This document shows, piece by piece, positions 31,833-63,853 of a DNA stretch of 64,000 bases. The notes beneath the pieces are model-generated. The model did no database searches. It worked only from the letters and a program-made list of their open reading frames with translations, and was not told the origin of the DNA. The number at the start of each line of letters is the position of its first letter. Position 1 is the first letter of the stretch. The position numbers and the translations under genes are program-made. This DNA comes from Heterodontus francisci (taxonomy: Eukaryota). The DNA lies in contig NC_090409.1 of NCBI RefSeq assembly GCF_036365525.1, forward strand, positions 39,318,437 to 39,382,436, in the 5' to 3' direction.

Positions 31833-32007
31833 TTAGTGCTGGACAGCCCCGTTCCCCAGAAGGTTTTGTTCTCCAGCTGCTCCATTCTGATGCTCAGGTG
31901 CTGTTGTGAAACATGGGACCTTGTGACCTAAACAAGTCACCCCTGTCAAAGGGACGACATGAGATGCTTCATTTTGATTGATGCTGTGATGCTTTTGAAC
32001 ACAATTC
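31833..32007 (-). CDS. Gene B last exon: cytoplasmic tail
   Basis: tttttttctcccag acceptor; NCVQKHHSINQNEASHVVPLTGVTCLGHKVPCFTTAPEHQNGAAGEQNLLGNGAVQH*. Confidence 0.8.
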
Positions 32008-35000
32008 CTGGGAGAAAAAAAACAGCAGAGTTCAGGTTACATTAAAAGAATCCAACACTTTGTACAAGTGTGTAAAGGAGCTGTTCAGGAGCACAGACCG
32101 ATTAAATTACACTCAACATCCTGGGCACCAATGGCAGCTGGAAAATGGGTCACAGGAGCTGCACGGTGATGGAGCACAGAGTGTAGAGGAGAGGAGGCTT
32201 ATAGAGGAGGCAATGGGCAAGAGCTGGACACTCCACAGGACCTGTGCTGACCGAGGCACCAGACCAATAGAAAAATGACAGCTCACCTCAACATTGGAGA
32301 TTAAGAAGAATTGACGAGGATCTCGGTTAACACTGAGCTGAAGATGATGGGGATCAGATCAGACAGGAGGAGGCTGGGAATGTCTGTACTCTCCACACTG
32401 ATCCTGAATTATTGAGAGGAGTCACAGATGGACAGGACATTCCCTGATGTGATCAAACCCGACCCAGCAGTGACCAAACAGGCTGACGGAGGCAGAAATA
32501 TTGTGATGGGGGAAAAAGAGTCAGAGGACAGAGTTAGAGAATCTGCAATAGTTTCCCCCCCACAACTGGCAGATGGGTAAGAGATGGGCAGGGAGATGTG
32601 GATGTTGAGGGAGGCAGAGAAATGCAACATATTTTATTGTCAGTGATCAAAAGCACTGATGGTCAGGTCAAGGGATGAGAGTGGACACAGGGTATATCAC
32701 AGAAGCGGAGGTAGGTGGGATTTGAGTGATGGGGAGAATATGGAGTCAGAAGCACAGCTCAGGGTCTGATAGGACTCAGAGGTTGTGAACAGTCTGGTTC
32801 AGCCTCAGACAGTGGCCAGGGAGGGGGATGGAGTCAGTGACTGGGGAACAGAGCAAGGATCAGAGGCTGGTGAAAAGTCAGAGGAGAGGGGCCAAGGGGA
32901 TTTTAGGTGTAGGCTGGTGAGTTGTTTGCTGCAGAGATTAGGCGAGTGTCTATTAACTGTGTGATAGAGGGAGCCGCACATTCCTGCTCTTCACCTTCAG
33001 TTCATTAGCTAGAGGATGACAACAAGCTGGAAGTGACTGGATAATGCAGCATTGAAACATCCCACACAGCACAAAGTGTATCAGTGTACACAACATTTCC
33101 ACAACACCAAATAGAATAAAACAAAACTAGAATTAACAATGGGAACTGCAGAACATTCTAGAACTCACCATCTTTGTCGCTTTTGGATTATGAAAACTAT
33201 AAATCCCTGAAGAAGAAGAAGAAAAAGAATTCCGACAACCAATCCAACTACTGCTCCAGTAGAGGGTCCAGGACCTAGAGACAGAATGAAGCCGTTAACA
33301 GACTGCGACACACTAAACAAAACTAACAGCAGAGACTGTCAGCACCTAGTGTTTCAGAACCATCCCCAGTACAAACACATCCCTGGTCAATTCTAGTCCT
33401 GGAGGGATGTGGGAGATTAAACACCAATAAACAGCCGCAGACACAGGAAGCCACCCCACAGCTCGACTTTCTTACACACCCACAATGTGATCAATATATG
33501 GTTTCCAATGGAGATAACCAGACCCTGACCAGCAGCAGCCTCCCTTTAATTAAACCCAACAGCCCGCTGAAATAAAGCAGGAATTTAAAATAATTTGCCG
33601 TTTGGGTAAACCACAGGATTGGATGGAACGCTGGTTTACAGTGGGATCAGTATTACTTTCCACTGACTTCAATGCTGAGGAGTCCTGGGGCCTATGGGGA
33701 ACCGGTGGGGTGTAGTGGGACTGTTACTGGACTAGTACTCCAGAGCCCAGGTGAATGCTCTGGGGACAGGGGTTTGAATCCCACCCACAGCAGATGGTGA
33801 AATTTGAATTTAATTAATAAAATCAGTAATTTAAAATAAAAAGCTAGAATAATGGTGACCATGAAAACAGTCGATTTGTTCATGAATGTCCTTCAGAGAA
33901 AGAAATCTGCTGGTCTGGCCTACACGTAACTCCAGACTCACAGCAATATGGTTAACTCTGAACTGCCCTCTGAAATGGCCGAGCAAGCCACTCAGTTCAA
34001 CAGCAATTAGGGATGGGCAATAAATGCTGGCCTGGCCAGTGACGCAGACATCCCACTAACATGAATAAAATAAAACAAAGTGACTGCTGACAATGCAACC
34101 CACTGCCAACATCAGAGTGCTCCCAGCTTCACACATGTGCAGATCAGAGTCTTGCTGTTAGTACAGTGCTGCCCATGTGCAGTCTACGTCAGCACCCGGT
34201 TTACCAGGACTTATTCATGTCTACGCTCAAACATCATTGTGTACTGCAATGTCTGCTCACCGCTCACCCCCAGCCTCGCTTCATCTCCCCTCCCCACCCC
34301 ACCCACTCACTCCACACTTCACACCTCCACCTATCTGTGGGCCATTCACTCCAGCCTCCCCACTCCCTCTGCCACCCCACGATTGCTGCCTTTCTTCCTC
34401 GCACAGAGACAGAAAAGATAAGCAGGGGAGGAGAGGGGGAGGGGAGCAGAGGGATGGCAGAGGGAATGAAGCAGCGATGCCAGGAGCAAGTGGTGAGTAG
34501 ACTGCTGCGGTAGGCAGCGATGATGGCAGGAGGGAGCGAGGTACTGATGGAGGTGGCGACGGCAGGAGGGAGCGAGGTACTGATGGAGGTGGCGATGTCA
34601 GGAGGGAGCGAGGTACTGCTGGGGGTCGGATGGAGGTCGTGATGTCAGGAGGGAGCGAGGTACTGCTGGGGGTGGGATGGACGTGGCAAAGGCAGGAGGG
34701 AGCGAGGTACTGTTGGGGGTGGGATGGAGGTGACGAAGGCAGGAGGGAGCGAGGTACTGATTGAGGTGGCGAAGGCAGGAGGGAGCGAGGTACTGATGGA
34801 GGTGGGATGGAGGTAGTGATGTCAGGAGGGAACGAGGTACTGTTGGGGGTAGGATGGAGGTAGCGAAGGCAGGAGGGAGCGAGGTACTGATGGGGGTGGG
34901 ATGGAGGTGGCGAAGGCAGGAGGGAGCGAGGTACTGATGGAGGTGGCGATGGCAGGAGGGAGCGAGGTACTGCTGGGGGTGGGATGGAGGTGGCGATGGC

Positions 35001-38000
35001 AGGAGGGAGCGAGGTACTGATGGGGGTGGGATGGAGGTGGCGAAGGCAGGAGGGAGCGAGGTACTGATGGAGGTGGCGATGGCAGGAGGGAGCGAGGTAC
35101 TGCTGGGGGTGGGATGGCGATGTCAGGAGGGAGCAAGGTATTGCTGGGGGTGGGATGGAGGTGGTGATGGCAGGAGGGAGCGAGGTACTGTTGGGGGTGG
35201 GATGGAGATGGCGATGGCAGGAGGGAGCGAGGTACTGTTGGGGGTGTGATGGAGGCAGTGATCACAGCCACTGTGGGCATTTGTGTTTCATTTGTTTTGT
35301 GATAAATTGAGCGTCGCCATCTTTATTACTGGCAGCTGCCAAAAAAGGTCACAGACAGCGACGTTTCAGTGGATCAGGCTGCATTTTCACATATGCAAGT
35401 ATTGCGACACCTAGTGGATGAATTGTCAGAAAATGCAGCAAAAGAATAACAAACTCCCTCCTGACTGTATACCACTGTGCCCCCACCTCGGGTGGGTCTG
35501 TCCTGCCAGTGGGACAAGACATACCCAGGGATGGTGATAGAGGAGTCTGGGATGTAGGGTTGATTCTGTGAGTGTGACTGTCTCACACAGCTCGCCCAAC
35601 ATGGAGACCAGTCTCCAGAGGTCAGTGAGGGGGACTTTGCAGTGTTGACTGGGCTGGGTTTGCCTTTGCTGTGTCCTTATTCGATTCCTGGGTCACAGCC
35701 AGTGGGCCAGTTTTATTCTTGTTTTTCTTTCTAGTGGTTTGATACAAACTGATTGAAGTGGCCGAGCAAATCAGAGGGCAGTTAAAAGTCAACCAGGTTA
35801 ATGTGGGACAGGAGTCACATATAGACCAGACCGGGTAAGGACGGCAGGTTTCCTTCCCTAGAGGGACATTAGTGAACCAGTTGGGTTTTCCAACAATCCA
35901 ACAGCTTCATGGTCACTTTTATTGGGACCAACTTTATATTTCCAGATTTATTTTAAACTGAATTTCAATTCTGAAAGTGCCATGGTGGGATTTGAAGCCA
36001 CGTTCTCTAGATTATTAGTCCAGGCCTCTGGATTACTAGTCGAGTAACATAACCACTGCACTGCCGTACTCATAAAATCAGAGTAAATGCAGAATACCTG
36101 AAACAGAAACCTCTCACCTGTTACAGAGAGATTGACTGAATCAGCTTGTTGCCATTGATAGTGCTCACCGATCCTCTTGTAAATCTGACACTGATACTCA
36201 TTCTGGTCTGACTGCCTGAGGTCAGAGATCATTAGTGACCAGTTGCCTTGTTCCAGTTGATCTTGGAACAGGTTTGTTCTGTTTCTGAACTGTGGGTCTT
36301 GTTGTGTTAAATCATCGTTCCCATCGATAAACTTGTGTAAAATTTCACGATTGGATATCCACCAAATTACCTGTAATTCAGAGACTGGGACATTCCCTTT
36401 GTAGATACAGGGCAGCACAACCTGCTCCCCAAGGAACCCAGAAACTGGAAAAGATTGAAAGTATTTATCCACAGATATAACCTCCCTGCTGGTACATTCC
36501 ATCCCAAGCTTCACATGGTTACACTGCGATGCTTGATTTACAAGAAGCACTGATCAGTAACTCACTGCTTTCATTTCTGTGGGAAGGTTAAAGGTCAGCA
36601 ATGCAGTATTTATAATGACAAGTCTCCAGTACAGTGTACACTATTCTTGTCATTTTTAAAATGGAAACATCTCCGTGTCACACACTGAAACAAGTAAATA
36701 TCTACATTTTTACAATTTAACGCTGGTTTTACAACTGGGTCAATATTACTTGCCGTTGACCTCAATTAGCATTGCACCAATCCCAGTTTCCCAACTGGAG
36801 GGTTCGGTTAAAATTGTACCGAATCTTTTCACAGACTCCCAGAAACACTGATGCTAGTGGGAAGCAGGAATCCTCAGAGTTCTGTATCAGAGGGACAGGA
36901 AGGTGAGTCTCAGAAACAGAAATAACAATTGCAGGTAGTTTAAGGAGCAGTTACAGGTAACGGTGTCCCACATCACTCACTCTCACAGAATCATTCATTG
37001 GTAAAATATCACAGCATTTCAAACCTTCCAATATTACTACCTGTCTATCCAGCATGATCAAATGTAAAATCTAAAAACACATGCAGTAGTTTAGAAATAG
37101 ATTTACCTGGTACAGGTGTGTTCGGTACAGGTGTACGAGCTCGCTCTAAAGAAAACATCATGTGTTTAGTATTGTGTGTGAAACAAACTGCAGAAATGTT
37201 CAAAGACTCTATCGGGCTGGAGGGAAACACATCCCGGGAGGAACGAGACTTGGGTCAAACTGATCAGGAACAGGGTCGGCAGAGTGAAAAATCCAACAGG
37301 ATTGCATTCACTTTGAGGGATAGAATGGAAGTTTTCCAGAGTTACCCCCAACAGGATCATTCCCAGCAGACTACACCCACCTGTGGAGAGAATTCCCACA
37401 GGATCCTGGGCGACTGGGATACACTTTCAAGGTAAGTGCACTGGGTCTTGTAAAGGCTGCCTGAGGGGTGCTATGGACCCCACCTCCTGCACCCCAACAT
37501 CTGGAGACAGATGGAGCACGTTTCTGGAGAGTGAGAGCAGCTTGATAGCACCGTTAACTCCTTCCATCACCCAGTTTAGCAGCTCTGTCCTTCAGGGCTC
37601 AGCCAGCTCGGTCAGTGGTGGGATTACAGAGTGACCCTTGGTGATGGAAAGTGAAGTCCCCACTCAGTACATTCTGTGTCCTTGTTACCCTCAGTGCTTC
37701 CTCCAAGTGGTGTTCAACATGGAGGAGAACTGATTCATCAGCTGAGGGAGGGCAGTAGGTGGGAATCAGCAGGAGGTCTCCAGGCCCATGTTTGACCTGA
37801 AGCTGTGAGATTTCATGGGGTTCAGAGTCAATGTTGAGGAGTCCTGGGGTCACTGACTCCAGACTGGATACCACTGTGTCCCCACCTCTGGTGGGTCTGT
37901 CCTGCAGGTGCGACAGAACATACCCAGGGATGGTGATAGAGGGGTCTGGGATGTCGGGTTGATTCTGTGATGATGACTCTGTCACACAGCTCTCCCAACA

Positions 38001-41000
38001 TGGACACCAGTCTCCAGATGTCAGTGAGGGGAACATGGCAGTGTCAACTGGGCTGCATTTGCCTTTGCTGTGTCCTGATTCAATATGTGTGTCACAGCCA
38101 GTGGGCCGTTCAATTTTATTCCTGTTTTCCTTTCCAGTGGTTTGATACAAACTGATTGAAGTGGCCGAGCAGGTCAGAGGGCAGTTAAAAGTCAACCAGG
38201 TTAATGTGGGACTGGAGTCATATAGACCAGACCGGGTAAGGACGGCAGGTTTCCTTCCCGAGAGGGACATTAATGAACTGAATTTAAATTCAGTTCAAAA
38301 TAAATCTGGAAATTTTAAATTCTGAAAGTGCCATGGTGGGATTTGAACTCAAGTTCTCGGGATTATTAGACCAGGCCTCTGGATTACTAGTCTAGTAACA
38401 TAACCACTGCACTACTGCACCCATAAAATCAGAGAGTAAATGCAGAATACCTGAAACAGAATCCTCTCACCTGTTACAGAGAGATGGACAACTTGATGAA
38501 AGACTGGACTCGACCTCTGCAGAATCTGACATCGATACTCATTCTGGTCTGACTGCCTGAGGTCAGAGATCATGAGTGACCAGTTGCCTTGTTCCAGTTG
38601 ATCTTTGAACAGGTTTGTTCTGTTTCTGAACTGTGGGTCTTGTTGTGTTAAATCATCGTTCCCATCGACAAAATTATGTAAAACTCCGCGCTTGAATATC
38701 CACCAAATTACCTGTAACTCAGAGACTGGGACATTCCCTTTGTAGGTACAGGGCAGCACAACCTGCTCCCCAAGGAACCCAGAAACTGAGTAACCTGGAA
38801 AAGATTGAAAGTATTTATCCACAGATATAACCTCCCTGCTGGTACATTCCATCCCAAGCTCCACATGGTTACACTGCGATGCTTGATTTACAAGAAGCAT
38901 TGATCAGTAACTCACTGCTTTCATTTCTGTGGGAAGGTTAAAGGTCAGGCATTAAGGGCCTTCAACTAAAACCAGCTTGTGCTGGATATTTGTATCCACA
39001 GAGCAGCTGGACAGCACTTTGAATCGTGTGTTTCCCATTGTACACATGCTGGGAGAACACATCAGGATCTTGGTCACCCTGCCCACCTCCCCCCTTTGGG
39101 AGAACAATGACAGACTGGGGGTGCACAATGTGAGGTGGAGCTCAGGAGCAGAAAACTGACCCTGAAATGTAAAGACAGGAACGGGTGGGGGAGGGGGTAC
39201 CCGAGGATGTGGAAAGGGCTTTGGACAGGTTGGGGGGACAATGACGGATGAGTACACTGTGTAGGGGGTGAGGCAGCACCTGATGGTCTGAAAGGGGCCG
39301 AGGCAATGTGGATCCTCACCTCTCCACCACTAACCTGTCAGACCTTGCTCCTCACCCTAATACGGCCAGACTCTGCCCCCTCCCAGGACCCAAAACACAA
39401 TCCCCAATCCTGATGACCCTACTCCCCATGCTCAGAGGCAATTCCCAGTTCTATTTGATCCAGGACTGTCCCAGACTCCTGATCCCAGTGCTCAGGACCC
39501 CATCCCAGTACCACTGGACCCCAGTCACCCATCCCAGTGTCACTGAGTGTTGCTCAGTGTCCAGATTCCACTGTTCACATCACAGGGGTTAATCTGAAGA
39601 CATTAACTGCCTTCCTTTCAGGTCTCATGATCATTATGTGTAATGTGAATCGACTGTGTCCACTCCCTCAATGGGCCCACTCACAGTGAACACAGCACCT
39701 TAAAGCAAGATGAATTCCTGATATAATGAAGACTATTCCCCAGTAATATACACATTACTGATTTCAGTCCCAGACACCCAGACAAATGTTCTTTCCAGGA
39801 GATAGCTAACTGCAGTCTGTATAAATTCACAAGGTTAGCACCATCCAGGAAGATAAATCCTGATATAATCCATGTCACCAGCAGCCCCGAACTCTGCTGA
39901 AATGTGAGAGCAGTCACAGCGTTTACCTGAAACAGCAGCAACAGCATTTAACAGCAGCAGCAGGAGGAGGAGTTTCTGTAAGTTGGGTCCCTGCAACAAG
40001 AAAACACAGTTACCCCCCTTTACCACAGTTTCTTGCTGCTCATGTCCATTACTGAGCCGGGACAGGACACAGTCCATGGTCCCTCTCCCCATTACTGACC
40101 TCCCTCCCTCCCGGATCTGAGACACATTGAGACCGGGAGCAGCCCTGACACAGTCCATGGTCCCTCTCCCCATTACTGACCCTCCCTCCCTCCCTCCCGG
40201 CTCTGAGACACATTGAGACCGGGAGCAGCCCTGACACAGTCCATGGTCCCTCTCCCCATTACTGACCCCCCTCCCTCCCGGCTCTGAGACACATTGAGAC
40301 TGGGAGCAGCCCTGACACAGTCCATGGTCCCTCTCCCCATTACTGACCCTCCCTCCCTCCCGGCTCTGAGACACATTGAGACCGGGAGCAGCCCTGACAC
40401 AGTCCATGGTCCCTCTCCCCATTACTGACCCCCCTCCCTCCCGGCTCTGAGACACATTGAGACCGGGAGCAGCCCTGACACAGTCCATGGTCCCTCTCCC
40501 CATTACTGACCCTCCCTCCCTCCCTCCCGGCTCTGAGACACATTGAGACCGGGAGCAGCCCTGACACAGTCCATGGTCCCTCTCCCCATTACTGACCCTC
40601 CTCCCTCCCGGCTCTGAGACACATTGAGACCGGGAGCAGCCCTGACACAGTCCATGGTCCCTCTCCCCATTACTGACCCTCCCTCCCTCCCTCCCGGCTC
40701 TGAGACACATTGAGACCGGGAGCAGCCCTGACACAGTCCATGGTCCCTCTCCCCATTACTGACCCTCCCTCCCTCCCTCCCGGCTCTGAGACACATTGAG
40801 ACCGGGAGCAGCCCTGACACAGTCCATGGTCCCTCTCCCCATTACTGACCCCCCTCCTTCCCGGCTCTGAGACACATTGAGACCGGGAGCAGCCCTGACA
40901 CAGTCCATGGTCCCTCTCCCCATTACTAACCCTCCCTCCCGGCTCTGAGACACATCGAGACCGGGAGCAGCCCTGACACAGTCCATGGTCCCTCTCCCCA

Positions 41001-44000
41001 TTACTGACCCCCCTCCCTCCCGGCTCTGAGACACATTGAGACCGGGAGCAGCCCTGACAGTCCATGGTCCCTCTCCCCATTACTGACCCCCCTCCCTCCC
41101 GGCTCTGAGACACATTGAGACCGGGAGCAGCCCTGACACAGTCCATGGTCCCACTCCCCATTACTGACCCCCCTCCCTCCCGGCTCTGAGACACATTGAG
41201 ACCGGGAGCAGCCCTGACACAGTCCATGGTCCCTCTCCCCATTACTGACCCCCCTCCCTCCCGGCTCTGAGACACATTGAGACCGGGAGCAGCCCTGACA
41301 CAGTCCATGGTCCCGCTCCCCATTACTGACCCCCCTCCCTCCCGGCTCTGAGACACATTGAGACCGGGAGCAGCCCTGACACAGTCCATGGTCCCTCTCC
41401 CCATTACTGACCCCCCTCCCGGCTCTGAGACACATTGAGACCGGGAGCAGCCCTGACACAGTCCATGGTCCCTCTCCCCATTACTGACCCCCCTCCCTCC
41501 CGGCTCTGAGACACATTGAGACCGGGAGCAGCCCTGACACAGTCCATGGTCCCACTCCCCATTACTGACCCCCCTCCCTCCCGGCTCTGAGACACATTGA
41601 GACCGGGAGCAGCCCTGACACAGTCCATGGTCCCTCTCCCCATTACTGACCCCCCTCCCTCCCGGCTCTGAGACACATTGAGACCGGGAGCAGCCCTGAC
41701 ACAGTCCATGGTCCCACTCCCCATTACTGACCCCCCTCCCTCCCGGCTCTGAGACACATTGAGACCGGGAGCAGCCCTGACACAGTCCATGGTCCCGCTC
41801 CCCATTACTGACCCCCCTCCCTCCCGGCTCTGAGACACATTGAGACCGGGAGCAGCCCTGACACAGTCCATGGTCCCTCTCCCCATTACTGACCCCCCTG
41901 CCTCCCGGCTCTGAGACACATTGAGACCGGGAGCAGCCCTGACACAGTCCATGGTCCCACTCCCCATTACTGACCCCCCTCCCTCCCGGCTCTGAGACAC
42001 ATTGAGACCGGGAGCAGCCCTGACACAGTCCATGGTCCCGCTCCCCATTACTGACCCCCCTCCCTCCCGGCTCTGAGACACATTGAGACCGGGAGCAGCC
42101 CTGACACAGTCCATGGTCCCGCTCCCCATTACTGACCCTCCTCCCTCCCGGCTCTGAGACACATTGAGACCAGGAGCAGCCCTGACACAGTCCATGGTCC
42201 CTCTCCCCATTACTGACCTCCCTCCCGGCTCTGAGACACATTGAGACCGGGAGCAGCCCTGACACAGTCCATGGTCCCTCTCCCCATTACTGACCCCCCT
42301 CCCTCCCGGCTCTGAGACACATTGAGACCGGGAGCAGCCCTGACACAGTCCATGGTCCCACTCCCCATTACTGACCCCCCTCCCTCCCGGCCCTGACACA
42401 GTCCATGGTGCCTCTCCCCATTACTGACCCCCCTCCCTCCCGGCTCTGAGACACATTGAGACCGGGAGCAGCCCTGACACAGTCCATGGTCCCTCTCCCC
42501 ATTACTGACCCCCCTCCCTCCCGGCTCTGAGACACATTGAGACCGGGAGCAGCCCTGACACAGTCCATGGTCCCTCTCCCCATTACTGACCCCCCTCCCT
42601 CCCGGCTCTGAGACACATTGAGACCGGGAGCAGCCCTGACACAGTCCATGGTCCCTCTCCCCATTACTGACCCTCCCTCCCGGCTCTGAGACACATTGAG
42701 ACCGGGAGCAGCCCTGACACAGTCCATGGTCCCACTCCCCATTACTGACCCCCCTCCCTCCCGGCTCTGAGACACATTGAGACCGGGAGCAGCCCTGACA
42801 CAGTCCATGGTCCCGCTCCCCATTACTGACCCCCCTCCCTCCCGGCTCTGAGACACATTGAGACCGGGAGCAGCCCTGACACAGTCCATGGTCCCTCTCC
42901 CCATTACTGACCCCCCCTCCCTCCCGGCTCTGAGACACATTGAGACCGGGAGCAGCCCTGACACAGTCCATGGTCCCACTCCCCATTACTGACCCCCCTC
43001 CCTCCCGGCTCTGAGACACATTGAGACCGGGAGCAGCCCTGACACAGTCCATGGTCCCGCTCCCCATTACTGACCCCCCTCCCTCCCGGCTCTGAGACAC
43101 ATTGAGACCGGGAGCAGCCCTGACACAGTCCATGGTCCCGCTCCCCATTACTGACCCTCCTCCCTCCCGGCTCTGAGACACATTGAGACCGGGAGCAGCC
43201 CTGACACAGTCCATGGTCCCTCTCCCCATTACTGACCTCCCTCCCGGCTCTGAGACACATTGAGACCGGGAGCAGCCCTGACACAGTCCATGGTCCCTCT
43301 CCCCATTACTGACCCCCCTCCCTCCCGGCTCTGAGACACATTGAGACCGGGAGCAGCCCTGACACAGTCCATGGTCCCACTCCCCATTACTGACCCCCCT
43401 CCCTCCCGGCCCTGACACAGTCCATGGTCCCTCTCCCCATTACTGACCCCCCTCCCTCCCGGCTCTGAGACACATTGAGACCGGGAGCAGCCCTGACACA
43501 GTCCATGGTCCCTCTCCCCATTACTGACCCCCCTCCCTCCCGGCTCTGAGACACATTGAGACCGGGAGCAGCCCTGACACAGTCCATGGTCCCTCTCCCC
43601 ATTACTAACCCTCCCTCCCGGCTCTGAGACACATTGAGACCGGGAGCAGCCCTGACACAGTCCATGGTCCCTCTCCCCATTACTGACCCTCCATCCCGGC
43701 TCTGAGACACATTGAGACCGGGAGCAGCCCTGACACAGTCCATGGTCCCTCTCCCCATTACTGACCCCCCTCCCTCCCGGCTCTGAGACACATTGAGACC
43801 GGGAGCAGCCGACACAGTCCATGGTCCCTCTCCCCATTACTGACCCCCCTCCCGGCTCTGAGACACATTGAGACCGGGAGCAGCCCTGACACAGTCCATG
43901 GTCCCACTCCCCATTACTGACCCCCCTCCCTCCCGGCCCTGACACAGTCCATGGTGCCTCTCCCCATTACTGACCCCCCTCCCTCCCGGCTCTGAGACAC

Positions 44001-46176: not shown

Positions 46177-46188
46177 GAAATGGAAACT
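46177..46188. promoter_or_regulatory. ISRE-like site upstream of gene B
   Basis: GAAATGGAAACT fits GAAANNGAAACT, about 540 bp upstream of the ATG; motif match only. Confidence 0.35.
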
Positions 46189-48350: not shown

Positions 48351-48394
48351 ACACATATTTAAATTTCAACTGTTTTATCTTTGAACTGTTTCTG

Positions 48395-48740
48395 CTCGGG
48401 TCAGTGGCACCTGAGACAGCCGCCAATCAGGTGCCACAACGCCCTGTCACTCAGGATTCCCCGCCCAACCGACGGGCTGAGAAAACAGCCAGCCAATCAG
48501 GGAAAGGATGTGCGAGCTGCACTTCCGCCAATCGGTGCTTTCCGCAGATATGACGACACTGTAAAGCGGGATTGCTATTGGTCCCTGATGCCATTAGAAA
48601 CCGATAAACAAGGTTACGTGTTCAGCCGCTGATTGGCTGATGGCTCGCCCAATGGCGGAGGATGAAGAAGGCGGGGGAAAATCAGCCGCCATTTTATGAC
48701 GCAGTCTGATTCACCGCCAAACTGTTAATTCCGGGAATTG
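48395..48740. promoter_or_regulatory. CpG-rich multi-CCAAT promoter-like element downstream of leader module D
   Basis: At least five CCAAT/ATTGG, CCTGTCACTCAG, ETS-like CACTTCCG, YY1-like CCGCCATTTT, TGACGCA, GAS-like TTCCGGGAA at 48729-48737. Confidence 0.6.
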
Positions 48741-48984
48741 TGAAACAAATGTTTGTTTGAGGTGATATTTCGGCGTCGATGTTATCCAGAGGAGATGCGT
48801 TTGCTCAGGATGCAGTGTGATCGGGAACACCGGGATTTTCAGGAGCAGCCGGTAACAGCAGCTGAGGAACAAATGTCAGAAATGGATGTTTGTCTCCACA
48901 GAGCAGCTGGACATCGCTTTGAATCGTGTGTTTCCCATTGTAAACATATTGGTCACAATGTCCACCCCCAGTCTGTCATTAAAA

Positions 48985-51900: not shown

Positions 51901-51964
51901 CTGAAACAGCAGCAACAGCATTTAGCAGCAGCAGCAGGAGGAGGAGTTTCTGTAAGTTGGGTCC
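51901..51964 (-). CDS. Leader module D exon 2 (signal peptide; no cognate V exon)
   Basis: 64 nt, intact splice sites and peptide; downstream intron homology is lost near 48890, before the V position. Confidence 0.55.
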
Positions 51965-52039
51965 CTGCAACAAGAAAACACAGTTACCCCCCTTTACCAC
52001 AGTTTCTTGCTGTTCATGTCCATTTCTGAGCCGGGACAG

Positions 52040-52235
52040 GACACAGTCCATGGTCCCTCTCCCCATTACTGACCCCCCTCCCTCCCGGCTCTGAGACACA
52101 TTGAGACCGGGAGCAGCCCTGACACAGTCCATGGTCCCTCTCCCCATTGCTGACCCTCCCCCGGGTGTGAGACACATTGAGACCGGGAGCAGCCCTGACA
52201 CAGTCCATGGTCCCTCTCCCCATTACTGACCCTCC
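52040..52235. repeat. 81-bp unit, about 2.4 copies, in module D intron 1
   Basis: Same unit, one copy with the variant TCTCACACCCGGGG. Confidence 0.85.
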
Positions 52236-52260
52236 CCCGGGTGCGAGACACTGACAATAC

Positions 52261-52278
52261 CTGCAGCTCCTTTCCCAT
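52261..52278 (-). CDS. Leader module D exon 1 (MGKELQ)
   Basis: cccATGG, CAG|gtattg donor, phase 0; GC boxes at 52350-52382. Confidence 0.5.
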
Positions 52279-52904
52279 GGGGAGATGGAGAAGAATCACT
52301 TCCTGCTCAGCCGCATGTTCAAGCCGGTCCTGGAGCATGTGACCCAGCGAGGGGCGGGGCCTGGGATTTCGGGGCGGGGCCAGGCAATAGGAGCGGCCAC
52401 TATCTGCATCTGGGCCCATGGTGTGGGGAGAGGCTGTTACTCTGAGGACAGACAGAGGGAGATCAGTCCCGGTACCTTTCCCCTCTCAGAGGGGATGAAA
52501 TGAACAGCCGGCAGGGAATCAGCACTTGCTTGTTCTTTGACTCAAATCCCTTCAGACAGAGGCTGCACCATTATTCCACTCACTCACAACCCCCCCCTTC
52601 TCAGTGTGAAAATGGGTCAGTCCAGTCCCCCCGCCGCCATCTGAGTCACGTGACTGCTGAACCCAATCGGAATTTGACTTCAAATTAGACCGGAAATGAT
52701 GTAAATTCTCAGACTTTGTCAAAACAGAAACAGAGTTTAACCCTTTCAGCTCCATTCTCCTCCTCCTGTGCTGTTTCTATTCTATTTTATTCTCTGACTG
52801 TTCCTCAGAACTGAATCCACATCTTCCAGGGTGTTTTCTTTCACTGAATTTGAGATCCAGCTGTGGTTCAGTTGGTAGCTCTCCAGGACTTGGGAACAAA
52901 AATC

Positions 52905-55900
52905 AAGGTTAACACAGCAGTGCAGAGAAATTTACAGGCAACACAAAAATTGGCCTGGTGGTTAATAGTGAGGAGGGAAGCTGGAGACTGCAGGAGGATA
53001 TTGATGGACTGGTCAGGTGGGCAGAAAAGTTCCAAATGGAATTTAACCCAGAGAAGTGAGAAGTGAGACTTTTTGGGGAAGTCAAACAAGGCAAAGGAAT
53101 ACACAATTAATGGGAAAATGCTGAGAAATGTAGAGTAAGTGAGGGACCTTGGAGTAAATGTCCAGAGATCCTGTCGATAACCACCCTTTCAACCTGTCCT
53201 GCTAAGAAGGCATTTGGAATACTTTCCTTTATTAGCAGAGTATAGAATATAAGCAGGGAGGTTACACTGGAGCTATATAAAACACTAGTTAGGCTACAAC
53301 TTGAGTATGGTGTGCAGTTCTGATCACTTCATTACAGAAAATGGATGCAATTGCACTGGAGAGGGTACAAAAGAGGTTTTTTGAGAATTTTGCCAGGACT
53401 GGAAAATTGCAGCCACGAGGAAGAATTGGATAGGCTGGGTTGTTTTCCTTGGAACAGAGGAGACTGAGGGGAGATTTGATTGAGGTGTCAAGGTTGTGAG
53501 GGGCCTGGATAAAGTTGATGGGAAGCTCCTTTTATCTCAGTGCAATGGTCAGTGACTAGGGGACATAGATTTAAAGTGATTGGTAGAAGGATTAGAGAAG
53601 GGAGATGAGGAAACATTTTATCACCCAGAGGGTGGAGGAGGTCTGGAACTCACTGCCTGAAAGGGTCATAGAGGCAGAAACCCTCAACTCATTCAAACGG
53701 TGTCTGGATACGCACCTGAATATTGAGGAGTACATGACATTTAGGAAGGAGAGGAAGCTAGGAAAAGGTGGAGGGGTTGCTCTGTTAATTAATGATGGTA
53801 TTAGCACTATTGAGAGAGACGACCCAAGTTCTGAAAACCAAGCTATAGAAGCAGTTTGGGTCGAGATGAGAAATGATAAAGGCTAGAAGTCACTTGTGGG
53901 AGTGGTGTAGAGGCCCCCTAACAGTAACCACACAGTAGAACGGGGTATAAAAGAAATATGGGAGCATGTCAGAAAGGTCCGGCAAAAATCATGGGGAATT
54001 TTAATCTACATATAGACTGAAAAATTCAGATGGGCAAAGGCAGCCCAGATAAGGAGTTCATGGAATGGTTTTGCGATAGTTTCTTAGATCACCACATTCT
54101 GGAGTCAGAGAGCAGGACATACTAAACCTCATGTTGTGCAACAAGAGAGGATTAACTCATGACCTCGTAGTGAAGGTCCCCTCAGCTGTGATCATAGTAC
54201 AATTGAATTTTATATTCAGTTTGAGGGAGAGAAGAGTGGGTCCACAACTAGTATGTTAAAGTTAAACAAGGACAATTGTGAGGACAGGAATACAGAAGGT
54301 GGAGAGGCTAGCATTCCAGGCTAACTGCTAAGATGGCCAAATACACAAACAGACGTGGTCAGACCGGATTTGTCACATGACTAACTGGCTGGTGGAGTTT
54401 TTTTGAATCTGAACTTGCCACAGAGTTTTAAAACACAAAACTGTTTGCTCCTGGACTGAAAAGACCTCTCTCCTGTCTGCTCTCATCTCGCTCTCACCAG
54501 CTTCGGAAGCCATTGAAGACACACGAACCCCAAGATAGAAAAGTGTCCTATGGTGAACAAGGTTTAAAAATACCGGGCCCCAACGAAAAGCAAGAATTAC
54601 CTACAAGTGAGAACTATCTGCAAAAGGACTACAGCGAGCTCGAAGCACCGTAACAAGAAACTCTTCTGATATTGCCTTAAAACTCTTTTCTTCTGCTCTT
54701 TTCTCTCTCTATTTACATGTGTGTATTGTGTATACATGCTAGTGGGGGGGTGGGGGGAGGGTGGTGTGTATCCATATTAGTTAACCAAATTAGAGTTTAA
54801 GTTTTAATTAATTTCACTTTTCTTCTTTAAACCTAAGAAAGCCTGTTTGTACTCATTCTTTGCCTTATAATTGGAAAGCGGTGAACAAGCATTCACCAAG
54901 GGGGAGCTCAAAGTACACTGTATAAAATTAAACCGTTACAATAAGACCAGGTGAAGGCTGAGAAAGAACCCAAGGCACCTTTCTCACCTGGTTTAGTTTA
55001 GTTTTGAGATACAGCACTGAAACAGGCCCTTCGGCCCAACGTGTCTGTGCCGACCATCAACCACCCATTTATACTAATCCTACACTAATTCCAAATTCCT
55101 ACCACATCCCCACCTGTCCCTATATTTCCCTACCACCTACCTATACTAGGGGCAATTTATAATGGCCAATTAACCTATTGGCCATTATAAGTCTTTTGGC
55201 ATGTGGGAGGAAACCGGAGCACCTGGAGGAAACCCATGCAGACACAGGGAGAACTTGCAAACTCCACACAGGCAGTACCCAGAATTGAACCTGGATCGCT
55301 GGAGCTGTGAGGCTATGGTGCTAACCACTGTGCCACCCTATGTGGTCATAACACTGGCTAGAAATATGAAGACAGATAGTAAGAGTTTCTGTAGATATTT
55401 TTTAAAAAAGTGAACAAAGATGCTCCACAGATGATGCCAGATCAAAGTATTTCCAGCACTTTTTGTTTTTAATTTAACAAAGTGAGCGTCAGGGAAAAAA
55501 GGAGATGGCAGATGAATTGAACAGGTATTTTGCATCAGTCTTCAACATATAGGATATAAGTAACATCCCAGAAATAGCTGTAAATCAGGAAATGGAAGGG
55601 ATGGAGGAACTTGAGAAAATTACCATCACCAGGGATGTAGTACTGAGCAAATTGTTGGAGTTGCGGGCTGACAAGTCTCAGGGTCCTGATAGACTTCAAC
55701 CCAGGGACTCAAAAGTGGCTAGTGAAATAGTTGATGGGTTGGTTTGAATTTTCCAAAATTCCCTAGATTCAGAGAAGGTTCCATTAGATTGGAAAATAGC
55801 AAATGGAACTTCTTTATTGAAAAAGGGAGGGAGCCAGAAAGCAGGAAACTACAGGGCAGTTAGCTTAACATTTATCATCGGGAAAATGTTAGATATTATA

Positions 55901-57190
55901 AAAGACATTACGGCAGGGTACATAGAAAAATTCAAGGTAACCAGAGAGAATCAACATTGTTCTGTAAAAGGGAAATCATGTTGAACCAATTTATTGGGCT
56001 TCTTTGAAGTAGTAACATATGCTGTGGATAAAGGGGAACTGGTGGATGTACTGTACTTAGAATTCCAGAAGGCACTTGATAAGGTCCACATCAAAGGTTA
56101 TTGTGGAAAATAAAAGCTCATGGCATAGGGAGTTACATATTAGCATGGATAGAAGATTGGCTAGCTAACAGGAAACAGTAGGCATAAATGGGTCATTTTC
56201 TGGTTGATAAGGTGGAACAAGTGGTGTGCCACAGATGTCAGTGCTGGGGCTTCAACTTTTTACAATTTATATAAATGACTTCGATGAAGGAACCAAAAGG
56301 TACGGTTGCTAAATTTGCTAACGATACAGAAATAGGTAGGAAAGTAAATTGTGAAGGGGACAATAAAGAGGCTACAAAGGGATATAGATAGGTTAGGTGA
56401 GTGGGCAAAGATTTGGCAGATGGAGTATAATGTGGGAAAATATGAAAATGTCCATTTTGGCAGGAAGAATAAAAAAAAGCATATTATCTAAATGGAGAGA
56501 GATTGCAGAGCTCAGCAGAGAGATCTGAGTGTCCTAGTGCATGAATCGCAAAAAGTATGCAGGTACAGCAAGTAATTAGGAAAGCTAATAGAATGTTTAC
56601 TGCGAAGGAAATTGAATACAAAAGTAGGAGGTTATGCTTCAGTTATACAGGGCATTGGTGTGACCACACCTGGAGTACTATGTACAGTACTGGTCTCCTT
56701 ATTTAAGGATGTAAATGTGGTGGAAGCAGTTCAGAGAAAGTTTACTATACTAATATCTGGAATGGGCAGGTTGTCTGATGAGGAAGGGTTGGACAGGCTA
56801 GGCTTTATCCACTGGAGTTAAGAGGAAGACATACAAGATTCAGAGGGGTCTTGACAGGGTGGATGTGGAAAGGACGTTTCTCTTGTGGGAGAATGTGGAA
56901 CTAGGGGTCACGGTTTAAAAATAAGGGGGTCGCCCATTTCAGACAGATGAGAAATTTTTTCCCTCAGAGGGCAGAGTGTCTTTGGAACTCTCTTCCTCAA
57001 AAGGCGGTGGAAACAGAGTCTAATATTTTCAAGGCAGAGGTAGATATATTCACGATAAGCAAGGGGGTGAAAGGTTTTTGGGGTAGGTGGGAATGTGGAG
57101 TTGAGGTTACAATCAAATCAGCCATGATATTGTTGAATGTTGGAGCAGGCTCGAGGGGCTGAGTGGCCTACTCCTAATTCGTATGTTCGT
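52905..57190 (+). mobile_element. Decayed CR1 LINE pieces with nested LTR-like element (about 54300-54990) and V-SINE
   Basis: RT 3' fragment 52905-53720; endonuclease (FRKERKLGKGGGVALLI) from 53720; RT and 3' end 55340-57190. Confidence 0.8.
54992..55338 (-). mobile_element. V-SINE (HE1-like)
   Basis: Reverse complement of 5596-5945. Confidence 0.85.
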
Positions 57191-57194
57191 ATGT

Positions 57195-58400
57195 GCAGCT
57201 TGCCAACCCAAAAAATGACCCATTTATCCCTACTCTGATTCCTGTTCGCTAACCAATCCTCTATCCATGTTAATATGTTACCCCCTACACCGTGAGTTCT
57301 TATTTTGTGTAGTAATCTTTGATGTGGCACCTTATCAAATGCCTTTTGTAAATCCAAGTACACCACATCTACAGGTTCCCCTTTATCCATGTGACTTGTT
57401 ACTTTGTCAAAAAGAACTCGAATAAGTTAGTCAAACACCATTTCCCTTTCACAAAATGATGTTGGCTCCGTCTGATCACTTAATTTTCTAAATGTCCTTC
57501 TATAACCTCGTTAATAGATTTTAGCAATTTCTCTATGACATATTAGGCTAACTGGCCTATTTTTTATTTATAGCACTGAAACAGGCCCTTCGGCCCACCG
57601 AGTCTGTGCTGACCAACAACCACCCATTTATACTGACCCGACAGTAATCCCATATTCCCTACCAACTACATACGCTAGGGGCAATTTACAATGGCCAACT
57701 TACCCATCACCTGCAAGTCTTTGGCTGTGGGAGGAAACCGGAGCACCCGGCGAAAACCCACGCGGTCACAGGGAGAACTTGCAAACTTCACACAGGCAGT
57801 ACCCAGAATCGAACCCAGGTCCCTGGAGCTGTGAGGCTGCGGTGCTAACCAGTGCGCCGCCCTATAGTTTCCTGCTTTCCGTCTCCCTCCTTTCTTGAAG
57901 ATAGGTGTTACTTTCACAATTGAATTTGCGATTCTCCAATCTGCTGGGATTTGAATCTCAGCATCTATTGTCTGCAGCCATTTCCTTTCAGACGAGGATA
58001 CAGGTCATTAGGTCCAATGGACTTGTTACCCTTTAGTTCAAATTGTTTGCCCAGTACCTTTTCCCCAGTGATTGTGGTAAAAAAATTCCTCCCTCCCTTT
58101 TACCTCTTGATTTTCAAGCATTTCTGGGATGTTACTTGTGTCTTCTACAGTGAAAGCAGACACAAAATACCTGTTTAATACATCTGCCATTTCCTTCTTT
58201 CCCATTATTAATTCCCCAGTCTCACCTTCTGAAGGGATCAACACTCACGAGTTATTCTTTTTAAAAACTTGCAGAAAAACTATTTCTAGCTAGCTTTCTC
58301 TCATACTTTAATTTCTCCCTCATTATTGGTTCAGTCATTCTTTACTGGTTTCCAAAATCTTAGATCTTCTGACCAAACACATCTTTGCAGTTTTGTGCAC
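57195..58400 (-). mobile_element. CR1 RT fragment
   Basis: ORFs 57118..57390 (DVVYLDLQKAFDKVPH) and 58038..58244. Confidence 0.8.
57562..57862 (-). mobile_element. V-SINE (HE1-like) nested in CR1
   Basis: tRNA head and V-domain on the minus strand; CCTAT repeated at both ends. Confidence 0.82.
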
Positions 58401-59079
58401 TTTCAATTTGATGGAGAGGGGAATGAGTGGCTGGTGTTCCTGTCCTGATCCCTGTCTGGAAACTCCTGCTGGACATCAGGATCAGGCTGAGATGCAATGT
58501 TAAATAAGCTGCTGAATCTAAAGGAGTTGTTTAACAAGGCTCTGCTCCCAGCATCGAGCCTTCCTACACAGTGAATGTAGCAACAGAGAAAGGGCCACAA
58601 CACAGCAGGCCAAATGTTCCAACCCTCACCTGCCCTGAATGAGGATCCACATTGAGGATTGAACCTTGTAAAATTATACCTTCGCTGTCAAAACTCACAT
58701 GAAGACTGGATGTTTATGAGGATAACAGGGCACTACAGGCATCCCCATGTCAGCCATGACTCAGTGGGCAACACTCACCTCAGAGTCAGAAGGTTGTGGA
58801 TTCAAATCCCATTGCAGAGACCTGAGCACATAATAAACGCTGATATTCCCACTGCAGTACTGAGGGCATGCTGCACTGTCAGAGGTGCCACTTTTCAACA
58901 GAGATGCTAAACCAAGGGCCCCGTCTTCCCATTTCGATGTAAAAAGATCCGATAGACACAAGGTGAGTTCCATCTGCTTTGTCAAAGTTTACCATTTAAC
59001 CAATACATCAAACAGGTTATCCAACCACTCATCTCACTGCAACTTGTGGGAACTTGCTTTGTGTAAATTGGTGAGAAAG

Positions 59080-60790
59080 AGGTTTTATCAATACATTAAG
59101 AGTAAGAGGAAAACAAAGGAAAAAGTAGGGCCGATAGAAAACTAAAAGGTAAGGTATGTATAGGAACGGAATTTGTTGGTATTGTTCTTCATGAATACAC
59201 TGCATCTGTCTTCACAAAAGAGGGGGACGATGCAGATATTGCAGTTAAGGAGAAGTGTGAAGTATTGGATGTGATAAACATAGCGAGGGAGGAAGTATTA
59301 ATGGGATCAGCATCCGTGAAAGTTGATAAATCACCAGGGCCAGATGAAATGTACCTGAGGCTGTTAAAAGCCAGGGAGGAAATAGCAGAAAGCCTGACCA
59401 TCATTTTCCAGTCCTCACCAGATACAGGTGTGGTACTGGAGGATTGGAGGACCACGAACGTTGTACTTTTGTTTAAAAAGGAAATGAGGGATAGACTGAA
59501 TAATTCTACACCAGTCAGTCTAACCTCAGGAGTGGACAAATTATTGGAATCTATTCTGAAACAGGATAAACTGTCACTTAGAAGGGCACAGGTTAATCAA
59601 GAATAGTCAGCATGGATTTGTTAAGGGAAGATCTTGTCTTACCAATGAGATAGAATTTTCTGAAGGAGGAACAAAGATTGATGTGGATAATGCAGTTGAT
59701 GTGGTTTACATGGATTTCAGCAAGGCTTTTGACAAGGTTCCACATGGCAGACTGGTTAAAAAAACGCATGGGATCCAGGGAAATGTAGTGAGGTGGATTC
59801 AAAATTGGCTCAGTGGCAGGAAGAGAGGGTAATTGTTGACGGGTGATTTTGCGACTGAAAGGCAGTTTCCAGTGATGTTCCACAGGGCTCAGTACTGGGT
59901 CCCTCGCTTTTGTGGTATATGTTGTTAACGATTTGGACTTAAATGTAGAGGGTATGATCAAAAAATTTGCAGGCGACAAGAAAATTGACCATGTGGTAGA
60001 TAGTGAGAAGGAAAGCTGCAGGAAGATGTCAGGTGGGCAGAAAAGTGGCAAATGGAATTCAACCTGGTGAAGTGTGAGGTGATGCATTTGGGGAGATCAA
60101 ACAATAAATGGGAGGATACTGAGAGGTGTAGAGGAAGTGAGGGACCTTGGAGTGAATGTCCACAGATCCCTGAAGGTAGCAGGACAGGTAGATAGCGTGG
60201 TTAAGAAAGAATATGGAATCCTTTCCTTTATTAGCCGAGGTATAGAATATAAGAGCAGGGAGGTTATGCTGGAACTGTATAACTCATTGGTTAGGCCACA
60301 GCTTGAGTACTGTGTGCAGTTCTGGTCACCTCATTACAGAAAGGATGTAATTGCTCCAGAGAGGGTACAGAGGAGATTTATGAGGATGTTGCCAGGACTG
60401 GAAAAAATGCAACTGTAAGGAAATATTGGATAGGCTGGGGTTGTTCTCCTTATCACAGGGAAGACTGAGAGCAGATCTGAAACGTACAAAACTGAGGGGC
60501 AGAGAGGTCAGTGACTAGGGGGTATATATTTCAAGTGATTGGTGGAATGATCAGAGGAAACAGCTTTTCACCCATAGGGTGGTGGGGTCTGGAACTCACT
60601 GCCTGAAAAGGGTAGTTGAGGAAGAAACCCTCAACTCATTTAAAAAGGGGTCTGGATATGCACCTCAAGTGCTGTAATCTGCAGGGCTGCAGACCAAATG
60701 CTGGAAAATGGGATTAGGCTGAGGGTTCACTTTTCAACCGGCACAGACACGATGGGACAAGTGGCCTCTTCATGTGACAAACATTTTCTC
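59080..60790 (+). mobile_element. 5'-truncated CR1 LINE
   Basis: ORFs 59265..59606 and 60137..60418 (LVRPQLEYCVQFWSPHY). Confidence 0.88.
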
Positions 60791-60796
60791 TGAATC

Positions 60797-62065
60797 TGTA
60801 TAAATGGGAGAAACTGAAACTGGAATTTACCTTTCTGAGATACATTGAACTGTTGGTTGGGGCTCTCTCCTCATGTTGCTCTGATTTGGAACATGTTTGA
60901 CTGTCCCTGTGACCTCAAGACACACGGCTTTTAATGGAATCCATACTTCAGGATAAACTAGATCTTCCTCATTGTTGTGAGTGAGTTTACTTCAGTACCC
61001 AGGACACATTGATCACTCCATTTAGTTGCTGTTGTCCTTGTTTCAGTATCCGAGACACATTGGATGTCCTCATGGCTGTGGTTTTTTCACCTCTATTATA
61101 ATCCCCACTTGTTACCTCTACCCCGGTGAGCAGAGGTGAGAATTCCAGTCTTTGAATACTGGGTTCACATCCAGCAGTAAACTGGTACCCAATGGGAGCT
61201 GAGAGTCAACCCACCACCCATTGTATCTACCCGGACCCTCCTGGTACGGCGTTGTTAGTCAGGATAAGGACCTGTCCATATCAAGAAAGAGTCTTCCTTA
61301 TGGAGCACAATCTACTGGGTGTAAAAGCAGTGCAAGGAATCAGCTGCCTCATTTTAAAATGATATATTAATTCCTGAGATGTGGGTGTCACTGGCAAGGC
61401 CGGTATTTATTGTCCATCCAGAGACACCACTGGTGAAGGTGGTGCTGGGTCTTCTTCAACCGTTTCAGTCCCGTGTGGTGAAGGTGCTCCCACGGTGCCG
61501 TTAGGGAGGGAGATCCAGGATTTTGACCCAGTGACGATGAAGGAACGGCCGATATATCTCCAAGTTGGGACGGTGTGTGTGTGACTCGCAGGGGAACATG
61601 GAGGCGATGGTGTTCCCATGCTCCTGCTGTCCTTGTCCTTCTAGGGGAGGCTGGAGGTTGTGGGTTTGTGAGGTTTTATTGAAGAATGTGGGACTGGGAA
61701 CAGAAGAGAAAGAAGACTTGTTATCCTCCTTGTCCTGTCACCCTCCTCTAGGATACCTCAAACCCAGACAATAAATTCATTAATTAAATAAAAAACACCT
61801 TTACAATAAATCTAACCGCTTATTCTGGGAATTGTGAACACAAATGATTTTACAGCCTGGATGTTATCTAGAGGAGATGCGGCTGCTCAGGATCCAGTGT
61901 GATCGGGAACACCGGGATTTTCAGGAGCAGCCGGTAACAGCAGCTGAGAAACAAATGTCAGAAATGGATGTTTGTCTCCACAGAGCAGCTGGACAGCGCT
62001 TTGAAACGTGTGTTTCCCATTGTAAACATATTGGTCACAATGTCCACCCCCAGTCTGTCATTGTT
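60797..62065. repeat. Low-copy duplicated block, copy 3
   Basis: 60797-61815 matches 47215-48240; 61825-62065 matches 48735-48980. Confidence 0.9.
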
Positions 62066-62309: not shown

Positions 62310-62373
62310 CTGAAACAGCAGCAACAGCATTTAGCAGCAGCAGCAGGAGGAGGAGTTTCTGTAAGTTGGGTCC
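62310..62373 (-). CDS. Leader module E exon 2 (signal peptide; no cognate V exon)
   Basis: 64 nt, intact splice sites and peptide. Confidence 0.55.
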
Positions 62374-62451
62374 CTGCAACAAGAAAACACAGTTACCCCC
62401 CTTTACCACAGTTTCTTGCTGCTCATGTCCATTACTGAACCGGGACAGGAG

Positions 62452-62890
62452 ACAGTCCATGGTCCCACTCCCCATTACTGACCCCCCTCCCTCCCGGCTC
62501 TGAGACACATTGAGACCGGGAGCAGCCCTGACACAGTCCATGGTCCCTCTCCCCATTACTGACCCCCCTCCCTCCCGGCTCTGAGACACATTGAGACCGG
62601 GAGCAGCCCTGACACAGTCCATGGTCCCGCTCCCCATTACTGACCTCCCTCCCTCCCGGCTCTGAGACACATTGAGACCGGGAGCAGCCCTGACACAGTC
62701 CATGGTCCCTCTCCCCATTACTGACCCTCCTCCCTCCCGGCTCTGAGACACATTGAGACCGGGAGCAGCCCTGACACAGTCCATGGTCCCTCTCCCCATT
62801 ACTGACCCTCCTCCCTCCCGGCTCTGAGACACATTGAGACCGGGAGCAGCCCTGACACAGTCCATGGTCCCACTCCCCATTACTGACCCC
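62452..62890. repeat. 81-bp minisatellite, about 5.4 units, in module E intron 1
   Basis: Same unit as in A and B. Confidence 0.93.
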
Positions 62891-62914
62891 CCGGGTGTGA
62901 GACACTGACAATAC

Positions 62915-62935
62915 CTGCTGTGTTTTTCTATCCAT
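62915..62935 (-). CDS. Leader module E exon 1 (MDRKTQQ)
   Basis: gcaATGG, CAG|gtattg donor; start of ORF 62432..62935. Confidence 0.55.
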
Positions 62936-63176
62936 TGCCCCGATCCTGGATCATTCTCTCCCGGAGACAGGAGACTGGGAATCTGCTGCTCAGGGTCAGA
63001 AACAGCAGCCGCTGGGTCAGACAGTGAATATTGAAACTGACTGAGCTGCTGAATCTTTACAGACGGTGACAGTGGCGGGAATATGACACTGAAACCTGGA
63101 TCCGGGTTCTAAATAAACCATTTCTTGGCGGGAACGGCTTCTGTTGGCAGTCAGGGCCGGGGTCAGAGCAGGTCGC

Positions 63177-63853
63177 CCAATCAGCGGCCGGGACGGCCTG
63201 TCACTCAGTGATAGCCCTGCCCCAGCCCCCTGGCCCCGCCCTTTGGCTGGAACAGATTCTCTTGGCCCCAGTGGCGGGTTCAGAGCCAGTTGTCCAATCA
63301 ACAGCGGGGCCGGCCTGTCACTCAGTGATAGCCCTGCCCCCAGCCCCCTGGCCCCGCCCTTTGGCTGGAACAGCTTCTCTTGGCCCCAGTGGCGGGTTCA
63401 GAGCCAGTTGTCCAATCAACAGCGGGGCCGGCCTGTCACTCAGTGATAGCCCTGCCCCCAGCCCCCTGGCCCCGCCCTTTGGCTGGAACAGATTCTCTTG
63501 GCCCCAGTGGCGGGTTCAGAGCCAGTTGTCCAATCAACAGCCGGGCCGGCATGTCACTCAGTGATAGCCCTGCCCCCAGCCCCCGCCCTTTGGCCGGAAC
63601 AGATTCTCGGCGCCCCAGTGGCGGGTTCAGAGCCAGTTGTCCAATCAACAGCCGGGCCGGCATGTCACTCAGTGATAGCCCTGCCCCCAGCCCCCTGGCC
63701 CCGCCCTTTGGCTGGAACAGATTCTCTTGGCCCCAGTGGCGGGTTCAGAGCCAGTTGTCCAATCAACAGCCGGGCCGGCATGTCACTCAGTGATAGCCCT
63801 GCCCCCAGCCACCTGGCCCCGCCCTTTGGCTGGAACAGCTTCTCGGCGCCCCT
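63177..63853 (-). promoter_or_regulatory. Tandem 118-bp promoter repeat (about 5.7 units) upstream of module E
   Basis: Each unit has CCAAT, (C/A)TGTCACTCAG and CCCCGCCC; period 118 bp with one 111-bp unit. Confidence 0.8.

Follow-up and report, generated by a model that had tools for sequence, protein, structure and literature searches.

The 64,000-nt window of the horn shark (Heterodontus francisci) genome analysed here (NC_090409.1, positions 39,318,437 to 39,382,436 of the forward strand) carries on its minus strand a gene annotated in RefSeq as "CD276 antigen homolog", whose product is a membrane protein bearing a pair of B7-like V domains. We conclude that the gene is probably of the ordinary multi-promoter kind, with one V exon that behaves as a cassette, and that it is situated in a young and expanding cluster of shark B7-like genes. 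In the reading that we favour, to which we assign a probability of about 0.62, a partly duplicated 5' module gives alternative promoters and first exons, from which transcripts proceed through one leader exon to the first V exon (V1), a hinge, an optional second V exon (V2), a transmembrane (TM) exon and a tail exon. The gene and its isoforms are already present in the automatic RefSeq annotation, and no new diversity-generating mechanism is involved. The original prediction, made from the sequence alone, had been more ambitious: it proposed a combinatorial locus, in which any of three promoter-leader cassettes, termed E, D and B, could splice to V1, to V2 or to both.

Exon map of the two-V gene

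RefSeq provides two models for this gene. Isoform X1 (XP_067874636; P0229) has 370 aa in the order leader-V1-hinge-V2-TM-tail, and isoform X2 (XP_067874637; P0009), of 261 aa, is without V2. Both map to the window exon by exon at 100% identity in tblastn searches, and both begin in the first exon of cassette D, where residues 1-26 of each match 52338-52261 at 100%. The lengths of the coding sequence (CDS) exons total 1113 nt, i.e. 370 codons plus the stop, with the start of the tail exon taken as 32007; the exons were assessed singly by reference, and their lengths alone were added up. The window contains no runs of N, and all exons of the two-V gene have AG/GT sites and compatible phases.

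As had been predicted, V1 (38471-38794, 324 nt) and V2 (36118-36444, 327 nt) are both phase 1-1 and are followed by one TM exon and one tail exon. Both V exons match the Pfam V-set (5e-14 for V1, of the hinge-linked V-set subtype, and 1e-10 for V2), and V2 is a cassette exon, skipped in the RefSeq model X2. Between them lies a Pro/Thr-rich hinge exon (37107-37145, 39 nt, phase 1-1), seen in RNA contigs as well as in the two RefSeq models. The TM exon (33169-33274, 106 nt) runs from phase 1 to phase 2, hence it is not symmetric, and codes for a hydrophobic stretch followed by basic residues. The cytoplasmic tail exon (31833-32007, with the stop codon; 57 residues) contains no tyrosine and has no Pfam match. 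Read from the sequence, the leader, spread over two exons, has Leu8 at its core; this signal peptide and the single predicted TM helix point to a type I membrane protein.

A Pfam search of isoform X1 returned two V-set stretches only, with neither IgC nor B30.2, and the exon map (V-hinge-V-TM) holds no Ig exon besides V1 and V2. The solved structures closest to the V domains by sequence are CD276 (8e-20) and the VTCN1 IgV domain (8e-16), then MOG, PD-L1 and BTN1A1. To judge from these similarities, the protein is B7-like at the level of its V domains, yet it departs from the canonical IgV-IgC plan of B7 molecules.

The spacing between V1 and V2 is 2.35 kb, and their flanks are 90% identical. 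V2 has lost its ancestral acceptor along with the initial 18 nt of the exon (36427-36462), and the acceptor is now an internal CCAG joined to the polypyrimidine tract upstream; at the corresponding point V1, too, shows a deletion, of 9 nt. The end of the hinge exon encodes a PVP motif, like the motif found at the start of other V exons of the family.

Two further observations concern the 3' half of the gene. The tail exon is open in a second frame too (31994-32008, minus strand; GIVFK...), and the TM-skipping RefSeq isoforms of paralogs (P0013, P0040) read this second frame, giving putative secreted forms. By analogy, a hinge-to-tail splice in the two-V gene could likewise give a secreted form. 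In addition, the V2-TM intron contains ~15 copies of a 47-nt G-rich tandem repeat (34546-35255), kept at the same position (16491-17270) in an inverted one-V paralog of the same window, which we call gene A.

Candidate first exons and duplicated leaders

The standard 5' module of this family has an ATG exon of 5-7 codons and a signal-peptide exon of 64 nt, separated by an intron that an 81-nt minisatellite fills. Partial tandem duplication of this module has produced E, D and B together with two copies of a MYLRK-type first exon, so that 23 kb hold five possible first exons and three copies of the leader. The original prediction had placed ATG exons at 62935 (E), 52278 (D) and 45640 (B) on the minus strand, each with a 64-nt phase-1 leader, and splice sites and phases bear this out: all three leaders are 64 nt long, are bounded by AG/GT and exit in phase 1.

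Cassette E consists of a 21-nt ATG exon (62915-62935; MDRKTQQ) with a GT donor and the family-type proximal promoter kept, an intron with 5.4 copies of the 81-nt unit (62452-62892), and a leader exon (62310-62373) identical to those of D and gene A. Upstream of it lies, on the same strand, a tandem array of 6.2 copies of a 118-nt unit (63125-63844; Tandem Repeats Finder). The first exon of D (52261-52419) has a GT donor and, besides the RefSeq CDS start at 52338, further in-frame ATGs at 52419 and 52278 (MGKELQ); only its last ~10 nt are homologous to exon 1 of E and B. It is followed by a minisatellite remnant of 2.7 copies (52040-52251) and by the D leader (51901-51964). In B, an ATG exon (45620-45640; MDRKALQ), whose peptide also begins the paralog isoform P0232, precedes an intron filled over 5.5 kb by ~68 of the 81-nt units (40066-45597) and a leader (39927-39990) with one synonymous difference from those of D and E, at 39951. 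Of the two MYLRK-type first exons, both with a GT donor, copy 1 (47245-47259) lies upstream of B, and copy 2 (60831-60845; 15-nt CDS) within a repeated segment of ~1 kb (60796-61825). All these features are on the minus strand. Every feature listed in the original prediction thus proved real; the list had missed the 39-nt hinge exon, the two MYLRK first exons, the upstream ATGs of D at 52338 and 52419, the asymmetric phase of the TM exon, and two paralogs, gene A and a second neighbouring gene, W0.

The structure of these exons constrains the transcripts that can be productive. The ATG exons are without acceptor, so that only the ATG exon at the start of a transcript is used. As 64 is not a multiple of 3, the frame is kept only in an mRNA with a single leader; mRNAs with a second or a third copy have V1 in a wrong frame and meet stops after 24 or 28 codons. 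A transcript would thus begin at one copy, retain exactly one 64-nt leader and proceed through V1, hinge, optionally V2, TM and tail, and transcripts starting at E or D would have to skip the downstream leaders or be degraded. The alternative first exons supply 5-7 codons (26-53 in the long D forms), all of them preceding the Leu8 core of the signal peptide, which is cleaved off. Since they code only for the N-terminus of a peptide that is cleaved, the mature protein is unchanged by promoter choice, and the choice of first exon would instead alter the time and place of expression.

Alignment confirmed that the upstream regions of E, D and B differ, as had been claimed. The E proximal promoter and its GC-box/CCAAT-type module, carried by the units of the 118-nt array, are those of the annotated MDRKAQQ first exon of gene A (self-blast of 11285-11567 vs 63367-63066, 79.5%). 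In B, homology to the family promoter ends ~45 nt upstream of the ATG.

Evidence that such cassettes serve as starts comes from RefSeq models. At this locus isoforms X1 and X2 start at D, which in these models is no silent relic. Two near-identical paralogous loci (loci 1 and 2; XP_067874619-628 and XP_067874630-635) have isoforms in which the V1-hinge-V2 body is preceded by MDRKALQ (B type), MGKELQ or its long forms (D type), MYLRK (P0226 and P0228) or an MDGK-type start. Isoforms of locus 2 have either a 7-Leu or an 8-Leu leader, which indicates that two different leader exons are in use there. The D exon 1 of the present locus encodes His in place of an Arg of locus 2 and Pro in place of a Leu of locus 1, and the end of its V2 is unlike that of the paralogs. 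We infer for the present locus the activity of the E, B and MYLRK promoters, as well as the leader copy that D transcripts retain. Of the promoter-choice and exon-choice system originally proposed, what stands is that not all cassettes are dead and that V2 is optional in the RefSeq models; the idea that promoter choice would diversify the protein does not, the mature product being the same.

Alternative promoters or by-products of duplication

The original prediction had taken as its null model that D and E are young truncated duplicates that have not yet decayed. The history of the region agrees with part of this. A segment common to E, D and B, which runs from the end of exon 1 through minisatellite and leader to ~250 nt beyond, is 95-97% identical in self-comparison. 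Past it, E and D share another flank (60796-62062 vs 47210-48980) that bears the MYLRK exon, and D has an extra insertion of ~2.6 kb. The interval between E and D consists mostly of fragments of reverse transcriptase of the long interspersed nuclear element (LINE) type (52900-60500; open reading frames at 57118-57390, 60137-60418 and 53605-53886). A tblastn search with the full protein found no homolog or remnant of V, hinge, TM or tail exons at 40-64 kb, in accordance with the claim that V exons are absent between E and B; E and D are therefore truncated 5' copies rather than decayed whole genes.

These data allow a narrowed form of the null model, in which the locus has one productive 5' start, D exon 1 with one leader. 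Segmental duplication would then have left E, the B ATG exon, the spare leaders and the MYLRK exons as young by-products that are silent or give degraded, frameshifted multi-leader RNA. The duplicates are 94-97% identical with non-coding flanks included, so that intact exons are expected from age alone; the family promoter is gone from B beyond about -45, LINE fragments fill the E-D interval, more than one leader brings early stops in V1, and RefSeq has no isoform from E or B at this locus. However, the same cassette types open annotated isoforms at both paralogous loci, E retains the complete promoter type annotated as active in gene A, and multi-mapping may have prevented E or B isoforms from being modelled here. 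We consider this account possible but unlikely.

Several points nevertheless weigh against the alternative-promoter reading. Our RNA evidence covers the stretch 35300-40050, so that transcription of the E, D and B first exons stands as a prediction, and a leader-to-V1 joint is not among the joints listed for that stretch. No RefSeq model begins at E or B at this locus; the XP models are automatic predictions, and, the three loci being at least 97% identical in these exons, neither these models nor the Logan contigs, which are short, are locus-specific. The downstream leaders have perfect splice sites, and upstream transcripts might include them and be degraded. Finally, the spare leaders show 0-1 differences per 64 nt vs 3.5-6% in the flanks, which is not significant as a sign of selection for copies so young; the E and D leaders are conserved no better than expected for duplicates of this age.

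Splice joints and the choice of V exons

None of the sequencing runs compared with 35300-40050 is recorded as RNA. Run X1, which dates from 2024, nonetheless behaves as RNA-seq, with a depth of 5e3-9e4 in exon bins vs ~13-32 in introns. It contains the joints 38471->37145 (V1 to hinge) and 37107->36444 (hinge to V2), and a loose end past 36118 that continues into the start of the TM exon (V2-TM); the B leader exon has very high contig depth in the same run. Loose ends at the leader acceptor, from 2018 runs (X5-X7), correspond to MIEALT- and MDGKE-type first exons of paralogs, not to E, D or B, and show only that several first-exon types join this type of leader. A search with the D exon 1 peptide for transcript-derived fragments gave no candidate.

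These joints do not agree with two of the proposed V combinations. The proposed V1+V2 form implied a direct joint between the two, and both the RefSeq models and the RNA contigs pass through the hinge exon. A leader-to-V2 splice (39927->36444) had also been proposed, and the only such joint in the reads (39925->36448; runs X1, X6 and X7) has 12-13 extra letters, which are the start of a V exon of the W0 type or of a close paralog; we rejected it as the leader-to-V junction of a paralog. The sole protein-level choice with any support is therefore V1-hinge-V2 vs V1-hinge, V2 skipping being predicted by the RefSeq model X2.

A regulated combinatorial system, in which exclusive or stochastic promoter choice and a choice among V exons (V1, V2, V1+V2 or those of neighbouring genes) would give each cell a distinct ectodomain in the manner of protocadherins or Dscam, has some features in its favour. 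Every V and hinge exon in the cluster is phase 1-1, so that any combination is in frame. The four V exons of the window, aligned with their flanks (38321-38944, 35968-36594, ~15137-15784 and 3-560), vary mainly in two patches, C'-C'' and F-G, a 12-nt indel included, and diverge faster than their introns, of which the upstream 150 nt are 98-99% identical among all four copies; by this comparison the V exons are islands of divergence amid homogenised introns. At locus 1, two RefSeq isoforms of 470-472 aa with three V domains (P0225 and P0231) place the first exon, leader, V and hinge of an upstream gene before V1-hinge-V2-TM, which as modelled represents cross-gene splicing within the cluster. 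Yet nothing in the mature protein comes from the first exons, V1 is joined by V2 rather than replaced by it, no V2-only junction was found in the reads, each gene has its own TM and tail exons, hence no shared constant region, and read-through isoforms in automatic models are often noise. We hold such a system to be very improbable.

In a looser scheme, the whole cluster would act as a pool of frame-compatible exons. Any upstream cassette, sometimes with its V and hinge, would read through into downstream V exons, giving regulated one-, two- and three-V ectodomains, and the 64-nt leader would enforce one-leader splicing through frameshift and decay. This too seems improbable to us.

Comparison with known systems

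In functional terms, the two-V gene is best matched by alternative-promoter genes of the ordinary kind that lie in tandem clusters and have conjoined or read-through isoforms: its extra first exons come from partial 5' duplications, and some models join exons of neighbouring paralogs. It differs from them by an unusually high density of cassettes and by the conserved minisatellite in intron 1 of every cassette.

The original prediction had instead drawn on clustered protocadherins and UGT1. The likeness lies in a set of candidate first exons, differing in their upstream regions, that would join a common downstream body. In the protocadherin and UGT1A genes, the variable exon codes for the whole variable domain, whereas the first exons of the shark gene have a CDS of 15-21 nt (in D, 78-159 nt when the upstream ATGs are counted), i.e. 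5-7 residues (26-53) of a cleaved signal peptide. The shark locus also duplicates a second, internal exon, the leader, that is to be used exactly once. The analogy fails because the shark variable exon does not code for a variable domain.

The comparison with Dscam, likewise suggested at the outset, rests on symmetric Ig exons in tandem and on the frame constraint, which limits in-frame shark mRNAs to exactly one copy of the leader. There are only two V exons, both included in the main isoform, and docking or selector elements were not searched for and none were seen. The analogy fails because V1 and V2 are co-included, as seen in isoform X1 (P0229) and in the V1-hinge and hinge-V2 joints in RNA.

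With respect to protein type, CD276 (B7-H3) and VTCN1 (B7-H4) have the nearest V-domain sequences and share with the shark gene the type I membrane topology predicted here and phase-1 Ig exons. Human CD276 exists in 2Ig and 4Ig forms, which arise from Ig exons duplicated within one gene, with isoforms that contain fewer domains. The shark gene resembles it in having tandem Ig exons in one gene and RefSeq isoforms with and without the extra domain (X1 vs X2), and differs from CD276 and VTCN1 by the lack of IgC, the V-hinge-V-TM order, a short tail free of tyrosine and a signal peptide spread over two exons. Within the B7/butyrophilin family, the N-terminal B7-type IgV is present in the shark protein, but the membrane-proximal IgC (C1/C2-set) domain that follows it is absent, and its 57-residue tail lacks the cytoplasmic B30.2 (PRY-SPRY) domain of butyrophilins. 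Orthology to CD276 or VTCN1 is not established, and the RefSeq labels across the family vary between CD276, MOG, VTCN1, ICOSLG, JAML and SCN4B.

Neighbouring genes

Gene A occupies 3954-19938 on the plus strand and corresponds best to the RefSeq isoforms XP_067874647-653. RefSeq annotates three alternative first exons for it, MGLLVGG (3954), MIWKED (5397) and MDRKAQQ (11595), which all feed one leader (13291-13354). Its V exon lies at ~15.3-15.6 kb, its TM exon at ~18.5 kb and its tail exon at ~19.8 kb; V is joined straight to TM, the hinge being absent. Gene A also holds a 1.6-kb copy of the 81-nt minisatellite.

W0, another gene of the family, is found at 1-3473 on the minus strand (P0040/P0068; XP_067874655/656) and extends past the start of the window. 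It comprises a MIEALT first exon (3473-3438), a possible MDGK exon (1293), a leader (924-861) and a V exon (410-78). The MIEALT exon lies ~480 nt from the MGLLVGG exon of gene A in divergent orientation, an arrangement that suggests a possible bidirectional promoter.

A third MYLRK/MYLQK first-exon segment (25195-26480; exon at 25349-25363, minus strand) is located between the 3' ends of gene A and of the two-V gene. Isoforms with a MYLQK start are known for W0 paralogs (P0036), and this exon might supply the leader of W0 at a distance of 24 kb, with gene A in between.

Implications for the shark family

In RefSeq models from further sharks, Mustelus and Carcharodon among them, a conserved leader is likewise preceded by alternative N-termini. 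Full-text searching found no description of this shark family in the literature. If the duplicated cassettes are used, partial 5' duplications in a fast-expanding immune-type cluster would turn into alternative promoters almost at once, and the length of the leader, being indivisible by three, would act as a filter on splice products. The V-only genes represent a shark-specific branch of B7-like molecules, with V exons diversifying between nearly invariant introns, and such a branch bears on the evolution of non-rearranging receptor and ligand families in cartilaginous fish.

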